From contig OZ059895.1 of assembly GCA_964057225.1 (NCBI GenBank), positions 10,602,001 through 10,666,000 on the forward strand: a DNA stretch of 64,000 bases, written 5' to 3'. The DNA comes from Auanema rhodensis. Its lineage: Eukaryota > Animalia > Nematoda. Under the pieces are notes generated by a model. That model saw nothing but the letters and a program-made list of their open reading frames with translations. It had not been told where the DNA came from and ran no database searches. Positions 39,108 to 64,000 of the stretch are shown one piece after another (position 1 is the first letter of the stretch; each line of letters opens with the position of its first letter). Position numbers and translations under genes: made by a program.

Positions 39108-39660
39108 TAAACATAGATGCAAGCAGGATACTCATACTAAATTGAGTTGGGTTCGACGAATACAAAAATATTATTTACGATCATTACTTGCCATTGGGCT
39201 TGTGCATTATTAAATGATTATTTCCCACTGGGCTTGGAAAAGTAATCGGCTTTTGATATAGACCAACGCACCGTGCGCCAGTGGGACCATAGTTCATATT
39301 GTGAAAGAAAGTCGAATGAATTGGTACAAGTGCTCCGGAAAAGTAGTCGGCTCTTCTGAATCAAAAAAAAACTCTTCATTAAATTCGGACCGAGATTCAC
39401 TGGAAAGGCTTACATATTCCCGGCTAATAAACTGTTATTCGAAAAAATAACAGAAAAAAAAGGAGATGGATGCACAGTTCATTAAACATAAAAGAACACG
39501 CAAACCGGATGATAATAAGAAATAATAATCTGTGAAATCATGTGTTTTTTAATCAATTTTTTGTACATTTTTTCTGGCTTTCTTGTGATATTTAATAATT
39601 AATATTATTTCAATAAAATTTATCTATATTATTATTCTTATTTCATTTATTTTTGTATTT
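39108..39660. mobile_element. Rearranged second copy of the left end of the 47-56 kb Crypton-like element
   Basis: 39108-39238 is a direct copy of ~47103-47233. 39256-39658 is the reverse complement of ~47232-47633, with scattered substitutions. Confidence 0.9.
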
Positions 39661-39674
39661 TTTTTTATTTTTGT

Positions 39675-42680: not shown

Positions 42681-42809
42681 CTCAAAAAGACAAAGTAACA
42701 AAACCTAGAATGATCCAACTACTTGAGAGTACTCAAAAAAAATTAAACGAGAATCTTGACAATTAATTATCAAACAATTTCATACCTTACAGCTTTGGTT
42801 CGGCCCCCA

Positions 42810-43026
42810 TGTGATGCTTGTCTAGCCTAGTATCTTGCTCTATTCCAGCAATCTTTTGAACATTACAAGACTTTATTATATAGAGATAACTCTCTAGTGT
42901 TAGTATTAATAAGTAACACAATTTAAATAACCCAATAAAACAAAATCAAAAACAATCAGAAAAAAAGGAGACCTTTGTCTCACCAGTGAGCCCGACTCAA
43001 CTGACTCCCGTCCTCCTCTTATAACA
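42810..43026 (-). mobile_element. Gypsy LTR (217 bp), a duplicate of the 5' LTR including PBS and outer flank
   Basis: Minus strand reads TGTTATAAG...GCATCACA and is similar to 46560-46776. It is followed by PBS TGGGGGCCGAACC and has the same 43-bp flank (TGAAAGTAGATCATGC...) as the other LTR. Confidence 0.92.
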
Positions 43027-43069
43027 TGAAAGTAGATCATGCAAAATTGAAAAGGTGAAACAAATTTTG

Positions 43070-45420
43070 AACTTAATATACGTGTTATGGTCTCTTATTT
43101 CAAAATTCGTTAAAGATTTGATTATCGAATTCTAATCCTTTGTCAGAAATGATTCTTTTCGGAATCTTGCGCCCATATCCTATCCACCTATCAGCAAACG
43201 CTCCAAGAACCGCCTCCGCCGATATTTCTTTTATAGGATAGATCTCACACCACTTAGAAAAAAAATCTACCACTACTAGCCCATACCGATTACCTTTCTG
43301 GCTCACGTTTAACTCTACCAGATCCATGCCAATCACTTCGAACGGACTTGAAGTTAATATAGGTTTTAAAGGCGGTACATTATGTTTGGTATAGTTCTCC
43401 ATAAAACAACTTTTTCTTTGTAGGCAGAATTTGACAATGTCTCTTCTCATACTTGGCCAAAAATACTTATTTTCAAGAGTTAGATAAAGTTTTTCTGAGC
43501 CAAAAAGACCAGACCATTGTCCACCGTGTTCCTCATTTAGAACTTTTTCCCTCTCACCTGGTGCTATTACTTCCCTAATTCTACCTTCCGGATCAGTGTA
43601 CCGCAATACATCATGTTGTAATGAAAAATCCGAACTCTCTACACAACAACCCTCTACCTTAATTCTGACTTTTGTTTCTTCCTTAATAGCTTTAAATAGC
43701 TCCTTCCAACCTTCTGCATTTTTGAACCAACAATGCTCTGCTCTTTCACTTCTAACCTCCGCTATCACAATTTCTTCTGCAAAAGAGAGCTTATCAATAA
43801 CTTCATTTTCCCATCTTAATGGTCCTCTACTGAGCTTATCGGCTACTCTATTAGCAGGTTCATTTATGTACTCCATTTCTATTTCGTACGCTCTCAATTT
43901 AACCGCCCACCTTGTTACTCTATTAGAGCAATCTTCCCCCCTAAACAGACATAACAACGGTTGATGATCCGTTCTCACAATCACCCGAACTCCATAAATA
44001 AAACAGTGAAACCGATCGCAAACGAAACACGATTGCTAACGCTTCTAGGTCTGTTATAGCATATTTTATTTCATGTTTGATTAAAGATCTAGAGCAAAAA
44101 GCTATAGGATGTAAATGTCCATCTACCCCTACTTGTGTAAGAACACCCCTCAGTTTTTCGTTTTAATTGGCGTTTCTGTTATTTTTTTCTTTAACGATTT
44201 CTTCTGTTGTTCCTTCCATTCAAATTTCACTCCTAATGCACATAAATCATACAACGGCCTGATTTCTGCAGCAAAGCCTTTTATAAACTTCCTGTAGTAT
44301 GACAGTGAACCTAAAAAAGATTTCAACTGGGTTGTATTCCTCGGAACCGGGTATTCTGATATGGCTGCAACTTTCATCGGAACTTTCAATTCTGGCTTGA
44401 AAAACTCACATTTCGACGGCTTTAACCGTAAATTAAATTTTCTAAAGGCTAAAAATAAGATCCTAAGTACCTGTAGATGTCTTGCTTGAGTGACTGTTGC
44501 CACTATTATATCATCCAGATAGACATGGATTTCGCTTCCAACTAGACCTGTTTCTGCTAAAACAGTATCGATCGCTCTTTGGAATATTGCAGGGCTATTA
44601 GCAATTTCAAAAGGCAGCCTGTTAAACTCATATAACCCTTTATGGGTTATGAAGGCTGTTTTTGGCTTGGCTTCTTTATCTAAGGGTAACTGCCAAAAGC
44701 CTCGTAAACAATCCACAGATGAAAAGAACTTAGCCCGTGCCAGATATTGTAAAATTACTTCTATATTTGGAAGTGGATATTTGTCACTTACAATCACCTT
44801 ATTCAATTCTCTGTAGTCTACGCATAGGCGAAGAGATTTATCTCTCTTTCTTACTAAAACAATAGGTGCTGCTCAAGGAGATTTGGACCTGCTTGTAATG
44901 CCCTCCCGTTCCATCTCCTCCAACAAACAACTCAATTCTTCCCTCAAGCTGGCTGGGACTGGCCGCACTTGTTGTGCTACGGGACGCGCCTTACTAGTAT
45001 CAATAGACGCTGGCTGCACTTTCATGCCGGCTAGGTTCTCTGCCTCACTGCTAAAAATCTCTGTGTACTCATTAATCACCTTGTCCAGCTGATATTTTTG
45101 ATCTTTTGGCAGGTGCCCCAACTTTACATCTTGAAACCCTCGATTAGGTTCCTTTATTTTAATTGTACTAACTATTGCCTCCCCCAACTGCAAAATTCTG
45201 GATCGCTTGATCAACTCTTAACCTAAAACCTCAAACGCTTTGAATCCCAAGATAATTTCCAAACTATTGGAGTTCCTCACAAAACAAGATATTACCGCTT
45301 TGTTCTCTGTGCTATAGAGTTCTATTTCTAGGTCAGCTTTACCAACTAAACTTAACTGTTCCCCATTTACCCCTGACAGTGTTTCTTCTGTCTCTTTAAC
45401 CACAACTTTCTTGCCCATCC
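43070..45420 (-). pseudogene. pol: Gypsy pol (protease remnant, RT, RNase H, integrase N-terminus and core)
   Basis: RT motifs SP*AAPIVLV, LRLCVDYRELN, YPLP, KTAFIT, LPF, VYLDD. RNaseH motifs VRTDHQPL and ADKLSR. Integrase motifs YFWPSM, IGMDL, VVVDFFSKW, ISDKGLEF. Broken into ORFs 44873-45214, 44150-44806 and 43100-43984; ends before the catalytic Glu. Confidence 0.95.
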
Positions 45421-46488
45421 TGTTCACTATGTTTTCTTCCACTGATAATGAAGTATAATATTTATCGTACAACCTGTCCAACTCTCTTATAAATTCAACA
45501 ACACTATTGTGACAATTAAAAATGGAAAGGTTTCTCAACCTTTTTTCATTTTCCAGTTTAAACATATCAAACTGATGCTGAAACAATGTTCCCAACCTTA
45601 TTAACTTTTCTTCAAATGGAAGCGCTTTTTTTATTGATTTGAACGTTTCTAACGCGAAACCCGATAGACTGCTAGCAAAATAAAACGATGCGCTTCTGTC
45701 GTCAAGTCTTTGATGCTCAAACTTGAATTTAAAAAGCTCAATATGATCAGCTAAACTTTCAAAACGCTTTTCTTCAGAAAAAGATGTCAGGACCACACTC
45801 TGTCTAGTTTTCGCAACCTTTTGCTCAGCTGCTACTTTTTCTTGGTTTCGCAGAAGGCTTTTGACCAGCGCTTCTAACCTGTAGGCATGCTCCAGCGGGC
45901 TAATAACCGTAGGTTGTTCTGCGCTAGACGGTGTGGCTGTATCTCTCTCCAGTTCAACAGATCTCTCTCTCGCTTGGCGCGGCAGCTCTGAGTTTTTTCC
46001 ATCAAAATATCTTTCTCCCTTTTTGCCTTATCTAATTTTCCTTTCTACTGATTAACCGCTATTGCCGTTTGATTCACTATAAAAATAGCTTCCTCGCATT
46101 TGGTATTTTTTTCCGATATCTCCTTCTCTTTCTCCTGAAAGACATGCTCTAAGCGCTTGCTCTCTCTCACTGCCTCATTTTCTCTCTGTTTCACCATAGC
46201 TAGCAACATGTTCAACTCGTTTTCGTCTGCCACATCATGTGTAGCTGAAACAGACGTAACGTTTTGTAGAAACGCAGGCACTCTCTCTTCCAAATGTAAA
46301 CTAAGACATTCTGAAAATAGCGATGAACTTACTGTTGTAACTGCCTCATTTATCAGACTGATAGCCTTATCCCCCACTTCCTGGAAATGACTTGCTTTTC
46401 GAAGTGCTACAACATTTCCTTTCATCTCTTTGATCTCCTGGACCTTAGTTTCTAAAAAATTCCGGAACTCATACTTGAGAGTACTCAA
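45421..46488 (-). pseudogene. gag: Gypsy gag-like region (coiled-coil N-terminus, capsid-like segment)
   Basis: Lies between PBS and pol. ORFs 46045-46488 (coiled-coil-like) and the first part of 45218-45796 (FASSLSGFALETFKSI) are interrupted and internally deleted. Confidence 0.7.
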
Positions 46489-46545
46489 AAAAAATTAAAC
46501 GAGAATCTTGACAAATAATTATCAAACAATTTTACCTTACAGCTT

Positions 46546-46559
46546 CGGTTCGGCCCCCA
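46546..46559 (-). promoter_or_regulatory. Primer-binding site complementary to tRNA-Pro 3' end
   Basis: Minus strand TGGGGGCCGAACCG lies directly after the LTR's terminal CA. It matches the nematode tRNA-Pro 3' end CGGTTCGGCCC-CCA as recalled. Confidence 0.85.
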
Positions 46560-46776
46560 TGTGATGCTTGTCTAGCCTAGTATCTTGTTCTATTCTAGCA
46601 ATTTTATGAACAATACAAGACTTTATTATATAAAAATATCTTTCTAGTTTCAATATTAATTAGTAACACAATTTAAATAACCCAATAAAACAAAATCAAA
46701 AACAATCAGAAAAAAAGGAGACCTTTGTCTCACCAGTGAGCCCGACTCAACTGACTCCCGTCCTCCTCTTATAACA
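46560..46776 (-). mobile_element. Gypsy 5' LTR (217 bp)
   Basis: TG...CA termini, adjacent PBS, and a second copy at 42810-43026. Confidence 0.93.
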
Positions 46777-46794
46777 TGAAAGTAGATCATGCAA

Positions 46795-47100
46795 AATTGA
46801 AAAGGTGAAACAAATTTTGTTAACACAGACACATATTAATCCTGTTTTCCGGCGGGCTCAAGTTGCTGTTTTGTTCGATATTCAAGAAAAATTAAAAAAA
46901 TTTAAATGTTTATTTTTAGCTCTAGAAATACGTGCAACATCTCATTCAACTCAAAATTAACTGTTCAATAATATAAATTAGGTTTTGTAACCATATATCC
47001 GTAGTAATCATGTTTTGCGGCGGGCTCAACTTGCTATTTCGTTCGATTTTTATTAAAAATTAAATTTTTTTTTAATTTTTTTTTTAGCCCTAGAAATGCG
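46795..47100 (+). repeat. About two diverged satellite monomers, forward orientation
   Basis: Contains CAAATTTTGTTAACACAGACACATATTAATC, CGGCGGGCTCAAG and TAGCCCTAGAAAT. Confidence 0.93.
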
Positions 47101-47173
47101 TAAAACATAGATGCAAGCAGGATACTCATACTAAATTGAATTGGGTCCGACGAATACAAAAATATTATTTACG

Positions 47174-47232
47174 ATCATTACTTGCCATTGGGCTTGTGCA
47201 TTATTAAATGATTATTTCCCACTGGGCTTGGA
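47174..47232 (+). repeat. Left (sub)terminal inverted repeat built from a 34-bp unit
   Basis: ATTACTTGCCATTGGGCTTGTGCATTATTAAATG followed by ATTATTTCCCACTGGGCTTG (period 34). Reverse complement at 56252-56300. Confidence 0.85.
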
Positions 47233-47365
47233 ATACAAAAATAAATGAAAAAAGAATAATAATATAGATAAATTTTATTGACTTAATATTAATTATTAAA
47301 TATCACAAGAAAGCCAGAAAAAATGTACAAAAAATTGATTAAAAAACACATGATTTCACAGATTA

Positions 47366-49373
47366 TTATTTCTTATTATTAGCCGGTTTGCGTGTTCTTT
47401 TATGTTTAATGAACTGTGCATCCATCTCCTTTTTTTTTCTGTTATTTTTTCAAAAAACAGTTTATTAGCCGGGAATATGTAAGCCTTTCCAGTGAATCTC
47501 GGTCCGAATTTAATGAAGAGTTTTTTGATTCAGAAAAGCCGATTACTTTTGCGGGGCACTTGTACCAATTCATTCGACTTTCTTTCACAATATGAACTAT
47601 GGTCCCACTGGCGCACGGTGCGTTGGTCTATATAAAAAGAGTAGTTTAATAATTGGTTTAAAAACCTTTTTCATCCGTGTACATATTATATATTTTTGTG
47701 TCCCCATCGTTATTTTTATTAGCCGTGAATGATACAGCATGGAGGGAAGTTGGAAATCGTGAAGCCGCTGTTGGAGATTGTGAAGATTGTGAAGCCGCTG
47801 ATAGAGATTCTGTAGTATTCATAGCCGAAGATATAGGTGTAACCGATCTTGAAGGTCTGCTAGAAGTAGATACCGATGGTTGACTGCAATTCGAAACCGA
47901 CGATTCAGACGAAGAACGCGATCGTGGAGTATCCAAGCTCAAAGTAATGTACTTCTAAAAAAATACTATACTATGATAAGTAATAAAGAATTAATTTTTT
48001 TTTGCCGGCGGCTCCGTACTCTGATCTTCTATAGCCCTAGTCGTTTTTGGGGTATTCATGCTCAAAGAAAAAACCTGTTTGAATTTATATAAGATGTTAT
48101 GTGTGGTTATAAAGCAACTAACCTGCTCTTGTGGTAATACCAAAACAGTGGGGGTGGCTAGGTGCATGCAAGCCGTACCGAGCTTTAATTAATACACAGT
48201 CATACTAACAATGGAGTTAACACTTACTAGACTATTGTCTAAACTTAGAAGTTGTGACATCAATCGTTTCTTGTATGTCCTCTGGTTTTTTTCATAAATG
48301 CCGGTTTAGTAGTACTTCGACAAAAAAAAATCCGTCTCATTTAATCTTTATTATCTGAATTATCTGGAGGTTTCTAAAAAAATATATTTATTAATAATAC
48401 CGAGATTCATTCAAATGAGTGATAAACTTACTATCGGATACAGAAACGTGTCGCACAGTCTTTCATTAAAAAAAATTCCTGCGTTGAGAAAGACTCAGCC
48501 GGTCTGCTTAAAGTATACAAGCCAATGAAACAACAATATTTACAAAATAAGAATGCTGCTGTAATCTGAGCCATGTTATAGACGAAGTTTTCATCTGAGA
48601 TTAGTGGTCTTAGATGAATAACATCACAATAAGTTGAGCCGTTTAAATATAGAACTGTTAAAGAAATAAAAAATTAAGGCTCACTGTTTTTGCCTGGCAG
48701 CCGTAGCGACCAAGACCTTTTCCATTACCACTGTTCTTGCAAGCCGTGGTAGGTATATGGTCATGTCCCCTTGTACATTTACACCGAACATAAGGCTTTG
48801 TTGACCCGATCTGAAAAAAGATATATGTTAAAAAACTATAACTAATAATATTCTACCTGTATTTCGATTTCAGTTTTATATAAAGAGGTGTCTCAAAAGC
48901 CTGCCGCGGAATCAATGTTTTAAAAATACAGCCGTCTCCCAAATAAGTCACCGGTTCCGCTAATTAAAACAGAGTTGAGAGAAAAGCAAGAAGCTGTATT
49001 GAATGTAGGGGCTGAAATGAATTAATTAAAATTAAAAAAAAATTGAATCTACATTATCCCTGCGCCATTCAAGAGTTTTATGCTCATAGCCGACAATTAT
49101 AAGATGATACTGTACTTAGAGAGTGAACCAAGTACAGACTTCTCCCTGCCTAGCCGATACAAGCGCAGCCGGTAGCTAAATGTTAATAATATAATAATAT
49201 AACAATAGTAATAAATTAATAATAATATAACATTTATGAATATAATAAGACCTTGCCACGAAAGTATTGCGCAGCCGTTTGTCCACATCATTGCCTATGA
49301 TCGCATAGGAAGTCGGTGATAGGTCGCGGAAGTAATATGAATGTAACTCTTTGAACAATAATTTTACATCCAT
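47366..49373 (-). pseudogene. Multi-exon gene of unknown function carried by the element (Ser-rich linker, basic C-terminus)
   Basis: TTCAG|ATG at 49373 (MDVKLLFKELHSYYFRD...). GC-richer exons are separated by short AT-rich GT-AG introns (exon peptides LAEPVTYLGDGCIFKTLIPRQAFETPLYIKLKSKY, SGQQSLMFGVNVQGDMTIYLPRLARTVV, LYLNGSTYCDVIHLRPLISDENFVYNMAQ). Ser-rich exon 47658-47942; likely end ...KHKRTRKPANNKK*. Several stops and frameshifts. Confidence 0.65.
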
Positions 49374-49403
49374 CTGAAGTTAGAAATTAAAATTAAAAAC
49401 AAT

Positions 49404-49436
49404 AAAAAAAAAAAATATATATATATATATATATTG

Positions 49437-49470
<34 letters not shown>
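49404..49470. repeat. Poly-A, (AT)n and (TAA)n microsatellite in the AT-rich spacer between the divergent genes
   Basis: Directly visible runs of about A12, (AT)10 and (TAA)11. Confidence 0.9.
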
Positions 49471-49473
<3 letters not shown>

Positions 49474-50905
49474 TAATATATAATAAAATATAATACAAAA
49501 CAATAATGATCAATAATTAGCATAGCTTATGTACATTCAATATTTAAATATTCAAAAGCGCCTCAAGACTCACTAAATTATAAATTATAACACTGCTGTA
49601 TAGATATTAATAGTTATGCTACATTTAATATGTCGTCTTGGGAAGAAAACTTATTTCATAATTATTCAATTATTACAATAAATTATTGATTAATTATTAT
49701 CAAATATATTCTGCTTTTCATTTAATTATTTTTATTTGAGTTTTTTTACATACAGTTCGGCCTCCTTTTTAAAATCATTTTGTATTTTATATTATGTTTA
49801 TTTATATTTTTTATTTATTTTAAGATGCAGTTAAGCAGTTGGGAGATACGAAGAAGTTACAGTTCGGCAAACTGGACTGGAAATAAAAAAAATTGGAATA
49901 GGACGAGGGTTTTTTAACTCTTTTGAAATTATTTTTATTTGTTTAGGAGTTTTCACGAAGAAAACATTTAAAAAAAATGTGGTAGTAACGGCTTATTATA
50001 TTAACAAAGATGAAAAACCAACGGAAGAGATGGATGATTATTCCATCTCTTTAACTACGGGCGGAACATCATACAACGGCTATCGAAAAGCGGTGGAGTT
50101 TAAAAAAGAAGACGGCTTCAGATATTACGGAAACCTTATTAGCCATGCCACGGGCAGTCATGCGAATACTCGGCTTTAAAATAAAACAAGACAGGGCGTG
50201 CGAATGATATTGGTAATTACAAAGCGGCTAATATATTGTGGAGAGCAGCTACTAATTGATTACTATGAGTTTGTTTTTTTCCCATGTTTTTTATATAGCC
50301 TTTACTCAGTGGTGGCGGACGTTGCTTGATAAGACATCAGTACGATTGTATTTGTTGTAAATGTCGGAATTCCTGGTGCTACTGTTATAAGCACGATGCC
50401 ATGCAACTCACGGCGGCTTTCGAAAGGTATATAAAATATAAAAATATCAGTATATAAAAAAAATCTCATGAATCTAAATTCAGTAAACTTATTGTATTTC
50501 CTAATAATGAAGCGGAATTGGGTGATGGAAAGGAAAAGCGGCTATGCCCATTTTGTATAAAAATTGTAGATCGGAAATTTAAGAGTTGTTACCGGGACCA
50601 TATAAAAAAAAACAGCGGCGGGATAGATAAGTTCAAAGAGTTTATTTCTTGGTATGTTTCTTTTTCATTATTAATTTTTTCACATTTCATTTGTGGGTGG
50701 CGGAAGAATAAACATTCTGGAATAGCCGCGGATCTATTAAAAAAGTTCTTGGAGGAAGAACAGAATAAAATACAACAGAAAAATACGGCTTCAACGGCTG
50801 ACATTGAGGATGATGACGACGGCGGCTTACCTCATTTGGTTAGTTCTTTTTTAGTTTTCAAAGGTTCTTTGGGACCCACTTAATTTTCAAAATAAATTAA
50901 GTGGG

Positions 50906-52750
50906 TGTCGTTCCATCCGGATGATCAATACGTAGCAGGCGGGTTAGAGCTAGACGACAAGAGACGAGAGGAGCTGAAACGCCCTTTAAATGGAACTCAG
51001 ACAGTTCTGTCTCATGGAATGACTAAGGATGGCTTGTCATCTCCTCGGAGCTCACCTATAGTTTATATCTCTTCATTTCTTATCGTAACTTATTGTAACC
51101 ATTATGTAGAATAAACCTTTCTTTTCATGAGTCTTATGTTTATCCATTATGCTCTATTAATACCGCTACATCTGAAACACTATATCGCACATCTTATAGA
51201 CTACATTGGTCTATAGGATAGATGCGAGAGCATAACGGAAGGTTGGAGGTTCCACCTCGAACGTTTCTTTTACTTTCTCTTATTTTCTTAAATTTTATTC
51301 ACTCTTGTAATAATCATTTTCTTTTTAACTTTCTCCTATTCATTGCCATCTTCTCCACGCTAAAACACAAAACGGAAGAGCCAACATCGTTATAGGGAAC
51401 AGATGCAAGGAACTCTCATAATAAGAGAGTAAAATTATACATTTTGGGAAGAATTTATTTTACTTGATCCCGTTGTTCACAATTTTGTCATGTCTGAAAA
51501 TAAGTCACATATCCTTGCTATTAACATCTGATTTATACTGTTACCCGACCTCGAAGCCACATGAGGACTTTAGGCTGAATTCGTGAACAGATTCACCTAA
51601 AGATTTTATATATTTTGACTATTACCCACACCATTCTCCTTTTTAGGATTAATTTCGGCTTTGATTAAAGAATAACTCCAGTTATTCCTTAAATTTTGTG
51701 GATGAAAAGCATGCCAATTTGAAATTTAAATAATTTTGCGATGAGGACTATTACATTTTGCGTTTAAAATCGTTCAGACAACCTTTAGCATTTACCATCC
51801 AAAAACATAACAAAACGCTTAAAAATTGTACGGGAAACCTCACAACAAGTGAGAGGATGTTTAATTTTAATAACTTATATTCGCTATAGTCCGAAAAATC
51901 CTGCGATATTCTTACAAACTGATCTCCCAATTTAAATTTATTCGTCAGGTCGAGTTGGCTTAAGCATATCAGTTTGGATTTTCTCCCTTTACTATATGTC
52001 ACCTTCCTCATACCGTTATTGTTGTTTTGAAGCATAAGACTCATTCCTAAACACCATAATTCTGTAAATATAGTTATTGTAATTTTTAGTCATCTATTTC
52101 TAGCCATAATTTTAAAACTAGATTTCTGATCATTATGGGACTACCGTACTCATTCGTTTTCTAAATTGCTTCCTCAAAGAGTAAGAGTGTCGCTATCATC
52201 AACGAAGAGACAGCAGAGGAGAAGCCGAACGTGGAAAAATTTTACACACCCCGCGCAGGTACGTTTTCTCCTTCAGAACATTCTAGTGATCCGGACTACA
52301 TACCATCTGGAGACGACGAGCGACCCTTGATCATAGACGAACAGACACCTAACCAATATAATCAAACAGAGCACATTACTCCTCAGGAAGTTCAAAATCT
52401 GCACATACAGTAATAGCTGTTCCGAAAAAAATGACTGAGCCCGCAACCAATTTACCCGGAGCGGGGAAAACAACAATTGCCCAAGTTTTGACAGCACCCT
52501 ACTGCCCTGTTTATGACGGTAGCCTCAATTTCCGCGACTTTACCGCTAAATTTAATGTCTTCGCTAATGCACTTGGCCTAGTGATACCTGAAAGGTTGAC
52601 TCTTCTGCCGTTGCTTCTTAAAAATGATGCGGCAAAAGAACCATACAAACAAACTCCTGAACACCTTAAAACATCGAGTTCATGAAACGATATATTGCAC
52701 ATCTTATAGACTACATTGGTCTATAGGATAGATGCGAGAGCACAACGGAA
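50906..52750 (+). mobile_element. Truncated LTR retrotransposon (5' LTR, long leader, gag fragment) inside an intron
   Basis: Putative LTR 50906-51170 (TGTCG...CTACA, AATAAA at 51110) and a gag-like peptide downstream. Lies between donor TTG|GTTAGT (50839) and acceptor TTTACAG (52786), which join in frame. Confidence 0.75.
52135..52685 (+). pseudogene. gag: Gypsy-like gag fragment
   Basis: CPVYDGSLNFRDFTAKFNVFANALGL...LLPLLLKNDA resembles the retrotransposon capsid N-terminal pattern. In-frame stops upstream. Confidence 0.7.
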
Positions 52751-53991
52751 TGGTCCCAACAATTTAAATAATTTTTACATTTACAGAAAGAAATCCAGTA
52801 TTGGAAAAGGGGAATCAGATGTAAATTGATAAAGGAACTCGCCTACTATCTACCCCAATCTGAGGTACATCCCATGTTAACGGCTTTCGAAAAAAACGAC
52901 GACGGCTTTCCCCTGAGCATGATGAAGAAAAAAAAGTACAAAGTTGAGGACAGTAGAGTATGTTATTATTAATTTACTATTTAAATTTGTTTTTTTACAG
53001 AGGCAAAAGGCTAACAAGGTTGAAACGGCTACTTTTAAAACTTAGTCCAGCTTTATATATTTCACTATGCGGCTGAAAAAATCCAGGAATGTTGATATTT
53101 TAGATATGTGAGGTTAAAAAAGTGTTCAGTATTTTTCTTTTTCTTTCAAATGTTTTTTTAAGGCTTCCAAAAAATTGATCGAAATTGTTCAACATCAAAT
53201 AACGGCTGTCAACAATAAATACTCTTTGTTGACATTTACGAACGATTTAGGTCGGGCTTTCAACACCTTGTCCAGGTTTGAATCAGAAGACGGCTTTCCT
53301 CAATTGGTGGCATCCATACGACGGCTGAAAAAAATAGTGGAACCTGTGAGTTAGGCTTTCATTTTCTCTCGGACGTAATTTTAGATTATAAAATTTAATG
53401 AAACTAACGAAAGCTCAAATGGAATTTACCGACGTTCTTCACCAGCTACAAAAAATTCCATAGCTTCGCTAGACCACGGCTGCAAAAACTGGTAGCGGAA
53501 TATAAAGATATTGATAAAGTAAGAAAATAAAAAATAATTTTTTTCTTTCAGATCGCGGAAAAAATAAAATTAATGAGGAAATGTTCGGTTTACCTATGCT
53601 TTCACTTACTATATAATCTCGGTGTCCAAAGTGAAATTTTTTACAAGATTAAAACTAACGATATGATGGCGGCTTTGGAGAGAAGATCTGATCAATATGA
53701 AACGGCTTTGGTACCTTTTTTTTCAAAGAACGGACAAACATTATACGTGGTGGTTAATCTGGAATTGATGGCTCTCTATGAATTTTACATGAAAGAGAGG
53801 TAGCAAATACTATTATATCTTTTATTCATTACTTCCAGAATTAAATTATTTCCGAATAAATTATATTTATTCGCTAACTCGGAGAGCGATAATCTGAACG
53901 CGGCTTGCAATAATATGGTAGAATCAGCTTCTGTATTTCCGGAATTCTTGCATACAATAGCTTATGAGTTGATATTATTTAGACGTACCTA

Positions 53992-55399
53992 CAGTCCTGT
54001 GCGAAATAGTTGGGACACCCTCAACTAAAAGACCCCAGAAACCCACTTCAAACTACAAAAAAAAATTTCAAAAAATTAATTTAGGTTTCAGGATCAAGTA
54101 TCAAGAGATATTGATTGAAAATAGACTTTAAAATGATGAAAACTGAATTTTTAAAAAATAATTTAAGTTTAAAATTGAATTTTATGCTGATTTCATTGTT
54201 TTGCATAATTAAAAATGAAAATTCATAATTTAAGATGGTTAGAGGCAAGAAAACTACCCCTGAAGTACAAAACATTGTTCTAAGCATGAAGAATAGAGGG
54301 TTCAGCGTACGGAAGATAAGTCAGCTACTGACTTTGCCGAAGAGTACGATTCAAAATATTTGGAAAGCTTCACAAGAACCATACCAAATGGAGACAAGAA
54401 GAAGAGGAAGAAAAACAACAGTAGGACAAGATAATGTATTAATTAAACTCGTAGAGCGGCATCCGGATATCACGTCATCCGAGTTAAGCCAACATCTTCT
54501 AAGAATGTTCAGGATTAGGCTTGATCCTTCGAATATTCGACGAAGATTGTTGGCGAGAAATCTAAGAGCTCGAGTTCCTGCACGAAAGCCTCTAATATCG
54601 GTTGGTAACAGGCAGAAGAGAATAGATTTTGCCCGAGAGCATTTAAACTGGACGTTCGAAGATTGGTCATCTGTAATATTCACAGATGAGAGCAAGTTCT
54701 GCCTGTTTGGAAACGATAGACCAGGATTTGTAAGAAGACCTCGAAATCAACGCTTCAACCCTAAATACATGCTACCCACGGTGAAGCATGGTGGCGGCAA
54801 CGTCATGGTTTGGGGCTGCTTTTGTGCTTCCGAAGTTGGCCCTCTTTTTCGTATAGAAGGCAGGATGTGTGCCGAAGATTACCAAAATATATTAGAAGAA
54901 TGTTTCCTGCCGTATGCTGTATCAAAATTTGGAACAAGAAATCGGTTCATTCTTCAACAAGATAATGATCCGAAGCACACTGCTCGTTCGACTACAAGGT
55001 TTCTGGAGGACAATCGCCTGAACGTGCTGAAATGGCCTAGCCAATCTCCAGATCTCAACCCTATTGAGCATCTTTGGAGGGACTTGGCCGACGTTCATCG
55101 CAATTCCCATGTTCGAACAAAGATGAGAAATTCAGAGTCCTACGAACACTCTGAAGAGAAATAACACCGACTCTTCTGAAGAAACTCGTCGAATCGATGC
55201 CCAGAAGACTTCAGGCAGTAATTGATAATTTTGGCTATCCTACTAAATATTAATAAACGTGTTAATTTCAATTTTTAATTTTAGATTTTTTTTTTAGAGT
55301 TTTTGAATACTCATCATATTTTTTTTCGATTTTTTTGTAGTTTGTTTCGAAAGATATGAGGGATTCTAGTAAGTGTCCCAACTATTTCGCACAGGACTG
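53992..55399 (+). mobile_element. Tc1 (DD34E) DNA transposon, 1408 bp
   Basis: Perfect 27-bp TIRs CAGTCCTGTGCGAAATAGTTGGGACAC (53992-54018 and 55373-55399). TA target duplication at 53990-53991 and 55400-55401. Confidence 0.98.
54235..55253 (+). pseudogene. Tc1 transposase with C-terminal frameshift and stop
   Basis: HTH N-terminus, WSSVIFTDESKF, VMVWGCF, QQDNDPKH-(34 aa)-SPDLNPIEHLW. The canonical end LVESMPRRLQAVIDNFGYPTKY* is in another frame after ~55117, with TGA at 55152. Confidence 0.95.
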
Positions 55400-56251
55400 T
55401 ATATAGGTGCGATAGATTCTTTTAATCCGGAATCAGAGGAAGCAAAACGGCTAATGAGGGAGACCCATGCTCAGGCTCAAGGACATTCATTGGCTGTAAG
55501 TTTTCATTCAATTTTAAATCACTAGTACTTACCTTCAGATACGGGCAAAAGAGTACAGCTATTTAACGGAAGAGAGTGCATTACTCTCTTTCTCACATTC
55601 CCTTGAATTAATGAACAAAGATTACCAGGCTGACCGAAGAAAATCAATTATCAACGAGATAAATAAGAATAGAGTACTGATTATACGGGAAAGGAGCACT
55701 CACAACGGCTGATTAAAATCGAAAAGGATATAGTGAAGATCACAGCTAAAAACAAGGAAATGGCTGAGAATTGTTTCCAATGCTGCATATGCTGCATCAT
55801 ATGGAAAGATATGATCACCATAATTCCGTGCGGTCACCAAATTTGTATTGATTGCGGCTTCAAAATCATGGAAACATCAAATAAACGGAACCCTGGTAAA
55901 TATTTGTGCCCAGTGGTAGGTAATCATTTTTAAACTTCTCTGATATAAGTATTGCAGTGTCGGCTACCTTTTAAGGACATCGTAAAGGATTTTTCAAAGG
56001 AAGAACGGACCCAATTGAAAAAAGAAATGTTTACGGCTGTGGAGATCCACAAAAGTGAGCATTCCTTTGCGGAATTGAAACAGTACATGAAAGGATGCGG
56101 AAGAAATGAGGAAAGGCTAGCACCCATATTTAGGGTTATTACAATCGATTAGAAATTTGTTTTATGGAAATATAAATGTTTTATTCTATTCTTGTTCTTG
56201 TGCACTACTTTTTTTGTTCAATCAATATATCAACCTATCTATTTATCTATA

Positions 56252-56300
56252 AAATAATCATTTAATTATGCACAAGCCCAATGGGAAGTAATCATTTAAT
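56252..56300 (-). repeat. Right (sub)terminal inverted repeat (34-bp unit)
   Basis: AAATAATCATTTAATTATGCACAAGCCCAATGGGAAGTAATCATTTAAT is the reverse complement of the left repeat. Confidence 0.85.
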
Positions 56301-56304
56301 CCAG

Positions 56305-57203
56305 TCCCGTGGAGTACGAGTGATAGTACGTACGGACCACCAACCGTTACTGACTCTTTTCAAAAGCGTAGCATCTTCTAATAATTTAACACGCTAGGCA
56401 CTTCAACTTTGTAGATATGAAATAGAAATTGAATATGTTAAAGGAGAGATAAACATTGTGGCTGATGCCCTCAGCCGAGGTCCTACACCAGACCCTGAAC
56501 ATACTCAGGAAGAGTCGCTTAGAGTAGCAGATGAGGAAATCATTGCAACAATACAAGCAGAAGATCATCCGGATAATTGGTTGGATTTACTAAGAAATGA
56601 ACAGCCATGGGATCAGGTGATACAAACAGTAGAGAGCAGAATTTTTAAAGAATGGAAACTAGGGAAGCTCAAAATCAAAAGTGAAATGTTCTTCATAAAC
56701 AGTGATAATTTAATTCTCACAGAAGAATCAGGGCGGACAAGAATGGTAGTTCCAGAAAAAAGCGTTTCGAATTAATCGAACTACTACACGCAGGTTATTG
56801 GTCAGGTCACTTTGGACCTAAAAAGCTGATCCAACAGCTTACAGAGAAGTATTTATGGACATCAATAACAAAACATCTATATTCATGGTATATACGATGC
56901 ATGCGTTGCTATCTAGACAAATATCAGAATACAAACAAACCACCGTTGAAACCAATACTCACGTCAAAACCGTACGAGATTATAGGTATGGATGTCGTTG
57001 AGTTGGGTAAGACAACAAGAAGGGCTCGATACGCATTCACAGTGGTAGAAAACTTTTCGAAATGGGCAGCTTTTTACCCCATACCAGATAAATCGTCTAA
57101 TACAATTCTTCAAACGTTTATGGAACGATGGGTAGGATATGGAGGTAGATTGCCTAAAAAGATTATTAGCCATAATGGGCTGGAATTCGACAATAAGGAA
57201 TTG
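56305..57203 (+). pseudogene. pol: Gypsy RNase H / integrase fragment related to the 43-46 kb element
   Basis: VIVRTDHQPL, TR*ALQL, NIVADALSR, HAGYWSGHFG, PPLKPILTSKPYEIIGMDVV, RWVGYGGRLPKKIISHNGLEFDN. Frameshifted. Confidence 0.93.
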
Positions 57204-57410
57204 AGATATAGCACGTGCCCGCCGCAAAACATGATTATTGTGCTTCTGTGCTTACAAATTTTGTTTTAGCTTCTCAATTGACCAATTTTGAGTCCAATGA
57301 GATGTTGCACGTATTTCTAGGACGAATAATAAAATTTTTAGAATGTTTTATTTTTCATAAAAATCAAACGAAATAGCAAGTTGAGCCCGCCGCAAAACAT
57401 GATTATTGTG
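57201..57410 (-). repeat. Diverged 168-bp satellite remnant, reverse orientation
   Basis: GCCCGCCGCAAAACATGATTA occurs twice ~168 bp apart, with GATGTTGCACGTATTTCTAGG between. Confidence 0.92.
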
Positions 57411-57503
57411 AGTTTTACTTAGATAGCTCAACCCACGGCAGCAAATTATCTTCAATCTTATTTCTATATTACAGTTATGAACCAGTAGTTAATGAACCTT
57501 CAT

Positions 57504-57602: not shown

Positions 57603-58507
57603 GCAGCTGATTTTTAATTTTATCTCTTCCGCAACAAATGTTTCCAATTTTCAAGCAATTTTACTTAGATAGCTCAACCCAAGGCAGCAAATTATCTTCA
57701 ATTTTATTTCTATATTACAGTTATAAACCAGAAGTTAATGAACCTTCATCTTAGCTTTACTGTTTCTCTCTATTTCCTATTGTAACAAACATTGTTTAAA
57801 CACTATACCACTGTGAAACCTTTTTTAATTTATTGTAGTTTGAGCTCATAAGATTTGATATCATCTAGGGATTCAGATAAAACGTGGAAAATTACATAAC
57901 TAGCACAGAAGCTCAAACAGTGGAAGACGAAAGAAAAAATGGAATCGCACTTTAACTACCTCATATAGGACCAATATGGGATATAATGATGACGAACTGG
58001 AAATGGATCATGCCGCTTGTAGCCGTGATTGCCGCTGTTATATACTTCCTCTCTACTTCTGCTTCATTCTTCATGCCAGCTCTTATATCGGTCATACTTT
58101 CCTACTACTGTTTGGAAAAAACCAGCAATCCCCCTGTTGCAATATCAGGAAATGCCTGATTAAATTACATTTCACCCATTGACCTAGTACATATATTAAG
58201 ATATCTGATTACAATATTAAGATATCTGAATACAATTTCAAGAAAATACCGATCATTATTTTATTATTGCGCAACACTAACCCTCCCATTGTATCAATTT
58301 TCTACACAACCTCAAACCATATATAAGCTCGAAGATACGAGCCATTTTTCACTCTTAATTTATTTTTACCACTGAACCTATAACGATCTTATAATAAACT
58401 CTTCTCATTTAACTAACTGTTTGGATTTGCCACTAACTCATATTATCCCCATTAACCGGGGAACAACCGAGTATAGACGCTTGTCATTGGGAACATTAAA
58501 ACACAAA

Positions 58508-58616
58508 CATACCACGTTGAAAGTACGCCATCCCGTCCAATCTGGCACGTCAAGCAAAGTTGGGCCTGGTTAGTAGTTGAATCGGAGACGGCTTCGGAAT
58601 CCCGGGTGGCGTAAGC
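58508..58616 (+). pseudogene. 5S rRNA-derived copy lacking ~9 nt at the 5' end
   Basis: CATACCACGTTGAAAGTACGCCATCCCGTCCAATCTGGCA...GGTTAGTAGTTGAATCGGAGACGGC...GTAAGC followed by a TTTT run. Closely follows nematode 5S, but the 5' GCTTACG is replaced by ACACAAA. Confidence 0.88.
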
Positions 58617-59566
58617 TTTTCAAATTTTTTTAACAATCTTAACACGTTGAAAGTACGCCATGCAGGTGATTTTCAATTTTATCTCTTCCGTAATAAATGT
58701 TTTCAATTTTCAAGCAGTCTTACTTAGATAGCTAAACCCAAGGCAGCAAATTATTTTAAATCTTATTTCTATATTACAGTTATAAACCGGTAGTTAATGA
58801 ACCTTCATCTTAGCTTTACTGTTTCTATCTATTTCCTATTGTAACAAACATTGTGTAAACACTATATAACTGTAAAACCTTTTTTAATTTATTGTATTTG
58901 GAGCTCATAAGATTTGATAACATCGAGGGATTCAGATGAAACGTGGAAAATTACATAACTAACACAGAAGCTCAAACAGTGGAAGACAAAAGAAAAAATG
59001 GAATCGCACTGGAACTACCTCATATAGGACCAATATGGGATATAATGATGACGAACTGGAAATGGATCATGCCGCTTGTAGCCGTGATTGCCGCTGCTAT
59101 ATACTTCCTCTCTACTTCTGCTTCATTCTTCATGCCAGCTCTTATATCGGTCATACTTTCCTACTGCTGTTTGGAAAAAACCAGCAATCCCCCGGTTGCA
59201 GTATCAGGAAATGCCTGATTAAATTACATTTCACCCATTTACCTAGTACATATATTAAGATATCTGATTACAATATTAAGATATCTGAATACAATTTCAA
59301 GAAATTACCGATCATTATTTTATTATTGCGCAACACTAACCCTCCCATTGTATCAACTTTCTACACAACATCAAACCATATATAAACTCGAAGATACGAG
59401 CCATTTTTCACTCTTAATTTAATTCTACCACTGAACCTATACCGATCTCATAATAAACTCTTCTCATTTAACTAACTGATTGGATTCGCCACTAACTCAT
59501 ATTATCCCCATTAACCGGGGAACAACCGAGTATAGACGCTTGTCATGGGGAACATTAAAACACAAA

Positions 59567-59675
59567 CATACCACGTTGAAAGTACGCTATCCTGTCCAAT
59601 CTGGCACGTCAAGCAAAGTTGGGCCTGGTTAGTAGTTGGTTCAGAGATGGCTTGGGAATCCCGGGTACCGTAAGC
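59567..59675 (+). pseudogene. 5S rRNA-derived copy lacking the 5' end
   Basis: Same sequence one repeat unit later, with extra substitutions. Confidence 0.85.
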
Positions 59676-62600
59676 TTTTCAAACTTTTTTAACGATCCTA
59701 ACACGTTGAAAGTACGCCATGCAGTTGATTTTCAATTTTATCTCTTCCGCAACAAATGTTTTCAATTTTCAAGCAGTTTTACTTAGATAGCTCAACCCAA
59801 GGCAACAAATTATCTTTAATTTTATTTCTATATTGCAGTTACGAACCAGTAGTTAATGAACCTTCATTTTAACTTTACTGTTTCTATCGTTTTCCTATCG
59901 TAACAAACATTGTTTAAACACTATACAACTGTGAAACCTTTTTTAATTTATTGTATTTTGAGCTCATAAGATTTGATATCATCGAGGGATTTAGATGGAA
60001 CGTGGAAACTTACATAACTAACACAGAAGCTCGAACAGTGGAAGACGAAGGAAAAAATGGAATCGCACTAGAACTACCTCATATAGAACTAATATATGAT
60101 ATAATGATGACAAACTGGAAATGGATCATGCCGCTTGTAGCCGTGATTGCCGCTGTTAAATACTTCCTCTCTACTTCTGCTTCATTCTTCATGCCAGCTC
60201 TTATATCGGTCATACTTTTCTACTGCTGTTTGGAAAAAACCAGCAATCCCCCTGTTGCAGTATCAGGAAATGCCTAATTAAATTACATTTCACCTATTGA
60301 CTTAGTAGATATTTTAAGATATCTGATTACAATATTAAGATATCTGAATACAATTTCAAGAAAATACCGATCATTATCTTATTATTGCGCAACACTAACC
60401 CTCCCATTGTATCAACTTTCTACACAACCAAAAACCATATATAAGCTCGAAGATACGAGCCATTTTTCACTCTTAATTTAATTCTACCACTGAACCTATA
60501 CCGATCTTATAATAAACTCTTCTCATTCAACTAACTGTTTGGATTCGCCACTAACTCATATTATTTCCATTAACCGGGGAACAACCGAGTATAGACGCTT
60601 GTCATTGGGAACATTAAAACACAAACATACCTCTTCCGTAATAAATGTTTTCAATTTTCAAGCAGTTTTACTTAGATAGCTCAACCCAAGGCAGCAAATT
60701 ATCTTCAATCTTATTCCTATATTACAGTAATGAACCAGTAGTTAATGAACCTTCATGGCCCGGTTAGTACTTGCATCGGAGACAGCTTAGAAATCCCGGG
60801 TGCCGTAAGCTTCTCAAATTTTTTTAACGATCATAACACGTTGAAAGTACGCCATGCAGCTGATTTTCAATTTTATCTCTTCCGTAATAAATGTTTTCAA
60901 TTTTCAAGCAGTTTTACTTAGATAGCTCAACCCACGGCAGCAAATTATCTTCAATCTTATTCCTATATTACAGTTATAAACCAGAAGTTAATGAACCTTC
61001 ATGGCCCGGTTAGTAGTTGAATCGGAGACGGCTTGGGAATCCCGGTTGCCTTAGCTTTTCAAATTTTTTTAACAATCATAACACGTTGAAAGTACGCCAT
61101 GCAGGTGATTTTCAATTTTATCTCTTCCGTAATAACGCTTGTCATTGGGAATATTAAATAGACGCTTGTCATTGGGAATATTAAAACACAAACATACCTC
61201 TTCCGTAATAAATGTTTTCAATTTTCGAGCAGTTTTACTTTTGCAGTATCAGGAAATGCCTAATTAAATTACATTTCACCTATTGACTTAGTAGATATTT
61301 TAAGATATCTGATTACAATATTAAGATATCTGAATACAATTTCAAGAAAATACCGATCATTATCGTATTATTGCGCAACACTAACCCTCCCATTGTATCA
61401 ACTTTCTACACAACCAAAAACCATATATAAGCTCGAAGATACGAGCCATTTTTCACTCTTAATTTAATTCTACCACTGAACCTATACCGATCTTATAATA
61501 AACTCTTCTCATTCAACTAACTGTTTGGATTCGCCACTAACTCATATTATCCCCATTAACCGGGGAACAACCGAGTATAGACGCTTGTCATTGGGAACAT
61601 TAAAACACAAACATACCTCTTCCGTAATAAATGTTTTCAATTTTCAAGCAGTCTTACTTAGATAGCTAAACCCAAGGCAGCAAATTATCTTCAATCTTAT
61701 TCCTATATTACAGTTATGAACCAGTAGTTAATGAACCTCCATGGCCCGGTTAGTAGTTGGATCGGAAACGGCTTGGGAATCCCGGATGGCATAAGCTTTT
61801 CAAATTTTTTTAACAATCATAACACGTTGAAAGTACGCCATGCAGCTGATTTTTAATTTAATCTCTTCCGTAACAAATGTTTTCAATTTTCTAGCAGTCT
61901 TACTTAGATAGCTAAACCCAAGGCAGCAAATTATCTTTAATCTTATTTCTATATAACAGCTATGAACCAGCAGTCAATGAACCTTCATCTTAACTTTACT
62001 GTTTCTATCTTTTTCCTATCGTAACAAACATTGTTGAAACACTATACAACTGTGAAACCTTTTTTAATTTATTGTATTTGGATCTCATAAGATTTGATAT
62101 CATCGAGGAATTTAGATGTAACGTAGAAAATTACATAACTAACACAGAAGCTCAAACAGTGGAAGATGAAGGAAAAAATGGAATCGCACTGGAACTACCT
62201 CATATAGGACCAATATAGGATGTAATGATGACGAACTGGAAATGGATAATGCCACTTGTAACCGTGATTACCGCTGCTATATACTTTCTCTCTACTTCTG
62301 CTTCATTCTTCATGCCAGCTCTTATATCGGTCATACTTTCCTACTGCTGTTTCGAAAAAACCAGCAATCCCCCTGTTGCAGTATCAAGAAATGTCTGATT
62401 AAATTACATCTCACCCATTGACCTAGTACATATATAAAGATATCTGATTACAATATTAAGATATCTGAATACAATTTCAAGAAAATAACGATCATTATTT
62501 TATTATTGCGCAACACTAACTCTCCCATTGTATCAACTTTCTAAACAACATCAAACCATATATAAGCTCGAATATACGAGCCATTTTTTACTCTTAATTT

Positions 62601-62746
62601 AATTTCACCACTGAACCTATACCGATCTTATAATAAACTCTTCTCATTCAACTAACTGTTTGGATTTGCCACTAACTCATATTATCCCTATTAACCGGGG
62701 AACAACCGAGTATAGACGCTTGTCATTGGGAACATTAAAACACAAA

Positions 62747-62855
62747 CATACCACGTTCAAAGTACGCCATCCCGTCCAATCTGGCACGTCGAGCAAAGTT
62801 GGGCCTGGTTAGTAGTTGGATCGGAGACGGCTTGGAAATCCCGGGTGGCATAAGC
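62747..62855 (+). pseudogene. 5S rRNA-derived copy lacking the 5' end
   Basis: Same sequence; GTTAGTAGTTGGATCGGAGAC control-region segment present, followed by a T-run. Confidence 0.87.
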
Positions 62856-63052
62856 TTTTCAAATTTTTTTAACGATCATAACACGTTGAAAGTACGCCAT
62901 GCAGCTGATTTTCAATTTGATCTCTTCCGTAACAAATGTTCTCAATTTTCAATCAGTTCTACTTAGATAGCTCAACCCAAGGCATCAAAATATCTTCAAT
63001 CTAATTTCTATATAACAGTTATAAACCAGCAGTCAATGAACCTTCATCTTAA

Positions 63053-63457
63053 CTTTACTGTTTCTATCTTTTTCCTATCGTAACAAACATTGTTGAAACA
63101 CTATACAACTGTGAAACCTTTTTTAATTTATTGTATTTGGAGCTCATAAGATTTGATATCATCGAGGGATTTAGATGGAACGTGGAAATTTACATAACTA
63201 ACACAGAAGCTCGAACAGTGGAAGACGAAGGAAAAAATGGAATCGCACTAGAACTACCTCATATAGAACTAATATGTGATATAATGATGACGAACTGGAA
63301 ATGGATAATGCCACTTGTAACCGTGATTGCCGCTGCTATATACTTTCTCTCTACTTCTGCTTCATTCTTCATGCCAGCTCTTATATCGGTCATACTTTCC
63401 TACTGCTGTTTAGAAAAAACCAGCAATCCCCCTGTTGCAGTATCAGGAAATGCCTAA
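63053..63457 (+). pseudogene. Transmembrane ORF fragment repeated in each 1059-bp unit, possibly an env glycoprotein C-terminus (also 58943-59218, 59951-60277)
   Basis: Open frame with no true start. ...LELPHI(GPIW/ELIC)DIMMTNWKWIMPLV(A/T)VIAAAIYFLSTSASFFMPALISVILSYCC...: aromatic stem, hydrophobic helices, Cys pair, short tail. Confidence 0.45.
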
Positions 63458-64000
63458 TTGAATTACATTTCACCTATTGACTTAGTAGATATTTTAAGAT
63501 ATCTGATTACAATATTAAGATATCTGAATACAATTTTAAGAAAATACCGATCATTATCTTATTATTGCGCAACACTAACCCTCCCATTGTATCAACTTTC
63601 TAAACAACCTCAAACCATATAAAAGCTCGAATATACAAGCCATTTTTTACTCTTAATTTAATTCTACCACTGAACCTATACCGATCTTATAATAAACTCT
63701 TCTCATTCAACTAACTGTTTGGATTCGCCACTAACTCATATTATCCCCATTAACCGGGGAACACCCGAGTATAGACGCTTGTCATTGGGAACATTAAAAC
63801 ACAAACATACCTCTTCCGTAATAATTGTTTTCAATTTTCAAGCAGTCTTACTTAGATAGCTAAACCCAAGGCAGCAAATTATCTTCAATCTTATTCCTAT
63901 ATTACAGTTATGAACCAGTAGTTAATGAACCTCCATGGCCCGGTTAGTAGTTGGATCGCAGACGGCTTGGGAATCCCGGATGGCATAAGCTTTTCAAATT

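Follow-up and report, generated by a model that had tools for sequence, protein, structure and literature searches.

Cryptons are DNA transposons that use tyrosine recombinases (Goodwin et al. 2003). They are without terminal inverted repeats (Kojima & Jurka 2011, PMC3212892), and the DUF3504 host genes that derive from them (ZMYM2/3/4, QRICH1, KCTD1, KIAA1958, and woc) have lost most of the catalytic residues (PMC3212892). In a genome survey, none of the nematodes covered had a Crypton, the single one being in the outgroup Nematostella; PAT elements do occur in nematodes (PMC4157794). Here we describe a locus in a stretch of 64,000 nucleotides (nt) from the nematode Auanema rhodensis (assembly GCA_964057225.1, contig OZ059895.1, positions 10,602,001 to 10,666,000 of the forward strand), which as a whole is referred to below as the window and whose positions are counted from its first letter. 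It holds, on the plus strand, the dead copy of a multiexon gene in which a module resembling a tyrosine recombinase is followed by a C-terminal RING domain and probably preceded by SET-like and zinc-finger exons. This recombinase-like/RING fusion is a conserved gene family, known only from the dead copy and three exon-sized fragments. An earlier note on the same DNA had read the locus as a SET, zinc-finger, tyrosine recombinase, and RING fusion carried by a mobile DNA element flanked by satellite DNA and had pointed to the Crypton class for comparison.

The most direct evidence for the fusion comes from an intact relative, encoded by a contig of 1729 base pairs (bp) that we designate L003. Its nucleotides 936-1517 form one uninterrupted open reading frame (ORF) of 194 amino acids (aa), which contains in order the motifs RRSY and QGHS...RAKEY of the module and a C3HC4 RING. 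This single ORF bears out the proposal that module and RING belong to one protein, and its presence in an intact relative indicates that their fusion is a real conserved gene rather than an artifact of stitching together the exons of a decayed copy. The RING of the window likewise has the C3HC4 arrangement and is recognized by the Pfam family zf-C3HC4 at 21.4 bits (cut-off, 21), the sole Pfam match among the 10 window pieces that were scanned. That of L003 scores 23.4 bits against the same cut-off and retrieves the RINGs of RING1B, IAP, and BRCA1 from the PDB at E values of ~1e-3, so that both Pfam and the PDB confirm the domain. In the window, as in L003, the RING is split between CPV and CR by an intron (55916-55957), with the last cysteine in the next exon (55958). 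Literature searches returned no description of a combination of a recombinase with a RING. The finding is thus more than a chance mosaic, and the new fact in it is the conserved recombinase-like/RING fusion family.

The relatives came from a search of 1.84 billion representative proteins with the exon that carries the first arginine motif, or R box (query, 53531-53800). It yielded just two matches, P0001 (E value, 2e-11; 46% identity) and P0002 (E value, 1.5e-5), and a cluster lookup supplied a third protein, P0003, from the same 90% cluster as P0002. These proteins are encoded on short Logan contigs: L001 and L002 were assembled from run ERR11476990, and L003, the source of P0003, was assembled from run ERR11477541. 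L002 is identical to L003 over all of its 914 nt, and run ERR11476990 holds two paralogues that are only ~40% identical. Further searches with P0003 and with the family alignment returned only the already known fragments, and scans of metagenome and viral sequences found no relatives. We conclude that this is an animal, intron-rich gene family that is very rare in public data; given that it is represented by three exon-sized fragments among ~15 billion proteins, it has probably gone unstudied so far.

When spliced at GT-AG sites and one GC-AG site, L001 and L003 yield clean ORFs of 339 and 417 aa, respectively, that are collinear with positions 52787-56131 of the window (for L001, tblastn E value of 2e-37). 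Although the proteins are only 38-46% identical, intron positions are shared: before KEIQYW/KSVRYE, after ...SR/...NR, after ...ILDM/...DIHQ, after ...VEP, after ...DIDK/...DSRG/...EELE, and inside the RING between CP(V/L) and CR. The GC donor is that of the L001 intron 1043-1086 (exon end AG, then GCCTGT...TTGTAG), which has the position and phase of the window intron 53800-53838; L003 lacks an intron at this position and instead has one inside the IRR codons. At the residue where the window has glutamine, both relatives have arginine, in the motifs GLRSE and GLRPE, as had been predicted for the GVxSE motif of intact copies.

Within the window the ORF list shows only fragments of the gene, as the earlier note said, and the comparison supports a single collinear, same-strand, multiexon gene of which this copy is dead. 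Its introns are 42-57 nt long with TTTCAG-like acceptors, a nematode-like form. The N-terminal part of the module lies in four exons (52787-52957, 53001-53108, 53163-53345, and 53385-53518) collinear with L001. They are followed by the R-box exon (53552-53799), with the box-I-like motif GVQSE and the lysine of SKNG (53726-53728), and by the FRR/GHS exon (53839-55495), with LFRRTY at 53978 and QGHS at 55481, whose host parts are 53839-53991 and 55402-55495. The exon at 55539-55690 supplies the candidate catalytic tyrosine in RAKEY (TAC, 55554-55556); a frameshift separates it from the RING frame. The RING exons and the C-terminal tail occupy 55703-56152, with the RING at 55772-55915 plus the cysteine at 55958 and a terminal TAG at 56150. 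The K, FRR, GHS, and Y motifs therefore stand in the order that had been claimed, and the glutamine codon in GVQSE (CAA, 53627-53629) is indeed where the relatives have the arginine of GLR[SP]E. Read with an X at each break, the module and RING of the window copy amount to 549 aa.

The copy bears at least five inactivating lesions: the in-frame stops TAA (50177-50179) and TAG (53043-53045), a 1-nt frameshift near 53405, a second frameshift near 55690, a Tc1 insertion, and the arginine-to-glutamine replacement. This agrees with the view that it is dead by two stops, at least two frameshifts, the transposon, and the R-to-Q change. The claim that the exons join at canonical splice sites does not extend to the supposed intron between GRG and VFT, which is 38 nt long and does not keep the frame; it is either read through or another lesion. 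The ATG at 49825 is out of frame with the SET-like exon.

Two of the interruptions are insertions. A Tc1-family transposon occupies 53992-55399 on the plus strand, with 36-nt inverted ends and the dinucleotide TA at 53990-53991 and 55400-55401; its transposase ORF of 309 aa (54235-55164) contains DDE_3 and HTH_Tnp_Tc3_2 domains. It thus has the full set of Tc1/mariner features, namely, a DDE transposase, a Tc3-type helix-turn-helix, inverted ends, and a TA duplication. Removal of the transposon together with one TA rejoins the split codon, such that LFRRTY continues in frame into IGAIDSF exactly as proposed; of the coordinates previously given for it only the end needed correction, to 55399 from ~55409. 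The other insertion, ~1.9 kb of repeat DNA, has swollen an intron (50838-52786, plus strand; donor GTTAGT at 50838) to 1.95 kb in total. It contains one 72-nt direct repeat (51173-51243 and 52683-52754), and the label of long terminal repeat (LTR) fragment given to it earlier is unsupported, as it has no Pfam match and no similarity to the two nearby LTR elements. It also contains ORFs of 82 and 107 aa without a family match. Since it sits in an intron, it stands apart from the coding lesions. The acceptor at its end, before KEIQYW, is that found before KSVRYE in L001.

The module spans ~330 aa. Its conserved series resembles the catalytic pattern of tyrosine recombinases and type IB topoisomerases, with an R in GLRxE, a K in SKN, an R in IRR[ST]Y, an H in QGHS, and a Y in RAKEY, and the invariant or nearly invariant residues of the family are clustered at these motifs. 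The successive spacings between the five residues are 32-73-31-9 in L003 and 33-72-31-9 in the window; the equivalent values are 24-75-23-9 in XerD, 28-91-23-9 in Cre, and 23-76-22-9 in lambda Int. The H-to-Y spacing of 9 is therefore kept in both the window and L003 and equals that of all three recombinases. A chain of R-K-R-H/W-Y among the conserved columns, evaluated with generous canonical spacing ranges, arises in 63 of 20,000 column shuffles. In nonsignificant hhalign alignments, R, K, H, and Y of the family are paired with R148, K172, H270, and Y279 of XerD, and R and K also with R212 and K235 of lambda Int. A low-confidence AlphaFold model places the lysine in a beta hairpin, between two beta strands. 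On the basis of these residue patterns, the module is probably of the tyrosine recombinase type.

Upstream of the module, the SET-like exons (49836-50272, plus strand) carry GIGRG, VFTKKTF..VVVTAYY, YGNLISH, and GEQLLIDYY, with the in-frame TAA noted above and the frame-breaking 38-nt gap at 49909-49948. They are succeeded by a cysteine-rich exon (50299-50426), in which CKCRNSWC at 50356 has the post-SET pattern CxCx4C and whose splice phases fit on both sides, and by an exon encoding a zinc finger and an acidic linker (50484-50837), in which CPFC-x10-C-x3-H begins at 50545 and has no significant Pfam match. The motif order, GIGRG, LISHA (in place of NHxC, with both Asn and Cys replaced), GEQLLIDY, and then CKCRNSWC, is that of a SET domain followed by a post-SET region. 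Hence, the cysteine cluster and the CPFC finger are where they had been reported, and the SET domain is weakly supported, its motifs being present in proper order and spacing but giving no significant profile match. The proposed resemblance to the SET8/PR-Set7 type does not fit: that type is not known to have a post-SET region, and the CxCx4C motif here argues against it.

The gene lies within a 9.1-kb unit (47174-56300), of which it forms the right arm and which is bracketed by 44-nt inverted repeats that are 93% identical (47174-47217 and 56252-56295). The left repeat region (47174-47230, plus strand) continues beyond the paired segment into a second, partial tandem copy of an ~30-nt unit; the right one (56252-56300) lies on the minus strand. 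A 24-mer of the repeat has five matches in the window versus 0 expected. The left arm is a divergent unit on the minus strand (47231-49380; possible ATG at 49373), separated from the gene by an AT-rich spacer (49381-49824; ~25% GC) with (ATA)n and (TA)n tracts. Pfam recognizes no domain in this left arm, which is probably another decayed gene of the 9.1-kb unit; a Ser-rich ORF of 98 aa at 47661-47954 within it holds a 30-nt tandem repeat and has no Pfam match. Both divergent units stop ~100-125 nt short of an inverted repeat. We considered whether the left half might be an inverted copy of the right half, and this is ruled out, because the similarity is confined to the terminal repeat.

The two arms are further linked by a pentamer, CGGCT. 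It occurs 26 times in the sense and once in the antisense orientation in the plus-strand exons, where 1.5 occurrences are expected and 6 was the maximum in 2,000 dinucleotide shuffles, and 17 times in the sense and once in the antisense orientation in the minus-strand unit (expected, 1.05). This is an ~17-fold excess over the dinucleotide-shuffle expectation, with about one occurrence per 100 nt, extending over 47381-49277 on the minus strand and 49989-56038 on the plus strand. The motif is a strict pentamer that overlays the coding sequence of the two divergent units on the sense strand, falling in all three codon phases without a flanking consensus. The nested Tc1 has no copy of it, and it is present only at chance level in the ~1.9-kb insertion and the LTR elements. 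The inverted repeats and CGGCT thus mark the whole unit but not its nested insertions, which supports its being one unit. Decay of CpG dinucleotides as the origin of the motif is ruled out by an observed CpG content close to that expected, and no account of the motif was found in literature searches.

A second copy of the left repeat lies at 39179-39236. It has the same outside flank of satellite DNA as the first, and next to it comes 47232-47639 in reverse complement (93-96% identity; the duplicate spans 39006-39659); the breakpoint of the inversion coincides with the inner edge of the repeat. The common flank rules out a second insertion and identifies this copy as a segmental duplicate with an inversion.

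Taken together, we lean slightly toward reading the window copy as the pseudogene of a rare, conserved, intron-rich gene that encodes SET-like and post-SET domains, a CPFC finger, the ~330-aa recombinase-type module, a RING, and a tail and that forms the right arm of the 9.1-kb unit. The exon structure, the decay of the window copy, and the joining of module and RING in intact relatives are established. Several results weigh against other parts of this reading. As to the module, neither Pfam nor PHROGs gives a tyrosine recombinase match; phmmer, hmmsearch, and profile searches of the PDB give no recombinase match; hhalign probabilities stay below 1% versus 10 phage integrases plus Cre and versus XerC/D; and a lambda-type integrase hidden Markov model scores the family no better than shuffles. 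The AlphaFold models, with mean confidence (pLDDT) values of 36 for P0003 and 59.5 for the C-terminal half of L003 with its RING, are of too low a quality to be used. Met or Ile takes the place of the first His in the R-H-R-Y tetrad, and box I reads RxE instead of RxxE, such that a recombinase motif pattern built on RxxE fails on the family. A PDB profile match to a designed WD40 protein was rejected, as its score adds up weak matches of the repeats to "GHS..V." One could therefore regard the protein as a RING E3 ligase with a helical/beta N-terminal domain of another kind, in which the R-K-R-H-Y series is a coincidence, as all tests for a tyrosine recombinase by profile, PDB search, or structure came out negative, the first histidine is missing, and box I deviates by one residue in its spacing. 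We consider this unlikely, given the rarity of the conserved-column chain in shuffled alignments, the H-to-Y distance identical to that of XerD, Cre, and lambda Int, the clustering of invariant residues exactly at the catalytic-type motifs, and the recombinase-like placement of the lysine in the low-confidence model. The profile or structural match to a tyrosine recombinase that the earlier note had anticipated did not appear, in what was a low-power test: the queries were contiguous pieces of exon size and the family comprises three known members (alignment Neff, 1.6), which leaves the negatives underpowered.

The best Pfam match to SET reaches 13.1 bits versus a gathering threshold of 22.4 (E value, 0.13) and covers only 50180-50272, corresponding to profile positions 82-104 of 105; SET is nevertheless the only family that this 31-aa piece matches at E values of up to 10. 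The sole PDB match of the C-terminal piece, at an E value of 0.89, is again a SET protein (4LDG), aligned over the same ELxxDY block. The N-terminal piece matches nothing in Pfam and only noise in phmmer searches of the PDB, the Cys of NHxC is absent, and a protein search with the SET piece found no homologues. In addition, the SET-like exons are joined to the module in the dead window copy only, as the contigs of the relatives all end short of them. With this subthreshold evidence, the lack of an in-frame start codon for the SET-like exon, and a stop 14 codons into the reading past the donor at 50838, which could be a gene end, these exons might represent a separate upstream gene or chance ORFs outside the module/RING gene. 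That seems rather improbable in view of their continuity with what follows: they lie on the same strand and reach the canonical donor at 50838 without a stop, a phase-0 donor and acceptor match across the swollen intron, and the phases fit at three junctions from SET through finger to module. The density of CGGCT is moreover continuous across all exons. The first module exon, which has no start codon in the window, begins there and in L001 at a conserved acceptor. It must accordingly be preceded by other exons, and the acceptor immediately before it in L001 means that such exons exist in that relative too. A broader question is whether the gene belongs to a mobile element at all. It could instead be a host gene, such as a domesticated recombinase, from a family of which one paralogue died in heterochromatin, with the repeats a product of local rearrangement. 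The ~14 exons are unusual for a DNA transposon, and their conserved introns at such low protein identity, the three proteins in the whole collection, the lack of a target-site duplication around the 9.1-kb unit, and the lack of a second independent copy or any sign of transposition within the window would all suit a host gene, as would the visibly rearranged surroundings with the inverted duplicate at 39.2 kb and a sense-strand exon motif that is absent from the nested transposons. Nonetheless, intact relatives keep R, K, R, H, and Y, most of which the DUF3504 genes have lost (PMC3212892); a single run contains two paralogues that share no more than ~40% identity; the 44-nt inverted repeats are placed symmetrically ~100-125 nt beyond the ends of the two divergent units; and the CGGCT count is 0 in the relatives L001-L003. 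On balance, a host gene is a somewhat unlikely explanation, and we retain the pseudogene in the right arm of the 9.1-kb unit as the favored one.

The surroundings are repeat-rich eukaryotic DNA. A 168-bp satellite (219 copies, ~76% matches) fills positions 1-42600; between 36.7 and 42.2 kb it runs in the opposite orientation in a 336-bp higher-order form, broken at 39109-39674. It is followed by an LTR retrotransposon on the minus strand (42720-46819) with RVT_1, Integrase_H2C2, and rve domains and LTRs of ~350 nt that are 95% identical. Further satellite blocks at 46815-47108 and 57217-57413 lie on either side of the unit, in agreement with the description of it as satellite flanked. Directly beyond the right inverted repeat is a truncated LTR retrotransposon pol fragment (56311-57270, plus strand), related to the 42720-46819 element at 45-64% protein identity. 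This RNase H/integrase fragment begins right at the repeat, as though the 9.1-kb unit had landed in it or become attached to it. The end of the window, ~58000-64000, is a 5S ribosomal DNA array with a unit of ~1060 bp, in which Rfam finds the 5S gene kept in only three units (58499, 59558, and 62747). ORFs of 91-116 aa recur in most of these units and are probably not genes, and the SL1 leader 22-mer was sought in the 5S unit and not found.

Should the module be a recombinase, it would cut and rejoin DNA via a 3'-phosphotyrosine, the mechanism presumed for Crypton-type elements, and the 9.1-kb unit may be, or may once have been, a mobile element that works in this way. The RING, through the recruitment of an E2, and the SET-like domain, through lysine methylation, could then have chromatin or the recombination complex as their target; roles in antisilencing or in targeting are speculation. 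If the module works in the relatives, this would be the first eukaryotic tyrosine recombinase-type protein found fused to domains of the ubiquitin ligase and histone methyltransferase types. It would open a direct way to study the coupling between chromatin and an enzyme that rearranges DNA, whether in a transposon that counters silencing or chooses its targets or in a host enzyme, which in that case would act on repeat-rich DNA. The boldest form of this idea is an undescribed eukaryotic recombinase class, either mobile or put to use by the host, in which a competent tyrosine recombinase-type module, a RING E3, and a SET methyltransferase couple breakage and rejoining to chromatin marking and CGGCT serves as a signal for self-recognition or protection; we regard it as distinctly doubtful.

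Among described systems, the Cryptons offer the closest parallel. Like them, the gene is eukaryotic, has an R...K...R...H...Y pattern, has introns in its coding region, and has no reverse transcriptase of its own, and the same cut-and-rejoin chemistry can be presumed for both. It differs from them in that its unit has 44-nt inverted repeats with outer ends at 47174 and 56295, where Cryptons have none, and in the absence of His-I. No short direct repeat of the kind typical of Cryptons is shared by the ends of the 9.1-kb unit, and no piece of the window, L001, or L003 matches DUF3504 at E values of up to 5-10; nor is there a Pfam Phage_integrase match. With the inverted repeats present and no DUF3504 or other Crypton-type profile match, membership in the Crypton class, to which the earlier note had related the element, does not hold. 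A term search of the Crypton survey returned no occurrence of "RING" and no SET domain (PMC3212892), and literature searches on Cryptons with SET found nothing.

The DUF3504 genes resemble this family in that a recombinase-derived module is combined with zinc fingers or protein interaction domains in an intron-containing animal gene; they differ in the loss of catalytic residues that the intact members of this family keep, and there is no sequence match between the two. The DIRS, PAT, and Ngaro elements also use tyrosine recombinases, and the DIRS1 type has inverted terminal repeats (PMC4157794). However, these elements need a reverse transcriptase/RNase H in the same element, and there is no reverse transcriptase between the inverted repeats here, the RVT_1 and rve matches belonging to the LTR elements at 42720-46819 and 56311-57270, outside the unit. 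The SET-like exons share with SUV39/SET1/SET2-like proteins, which combine SET and post-SET domains, the order and spacing of GxG, xSHx (for NHxC), and GEQLLIDY, followed by CxCx4C, and depart from them in their subthreshold matches, the replaced Asn and Cys of NHxC, and the stop that truncates this copy. The RING is like those of the RING-HC E3 ligases IAP, RING1B, and BRCA1 in its C3HC4 spacing, in a Pfam score above the cut-off, and in its PDB matches, and it is set apart by its position at the C terminus of a recombinase-like module. The gene thus belongs to no named family, and we class it as one that would function in the manner of the Crypton-type recombinase genes, with accessory domains that are new.

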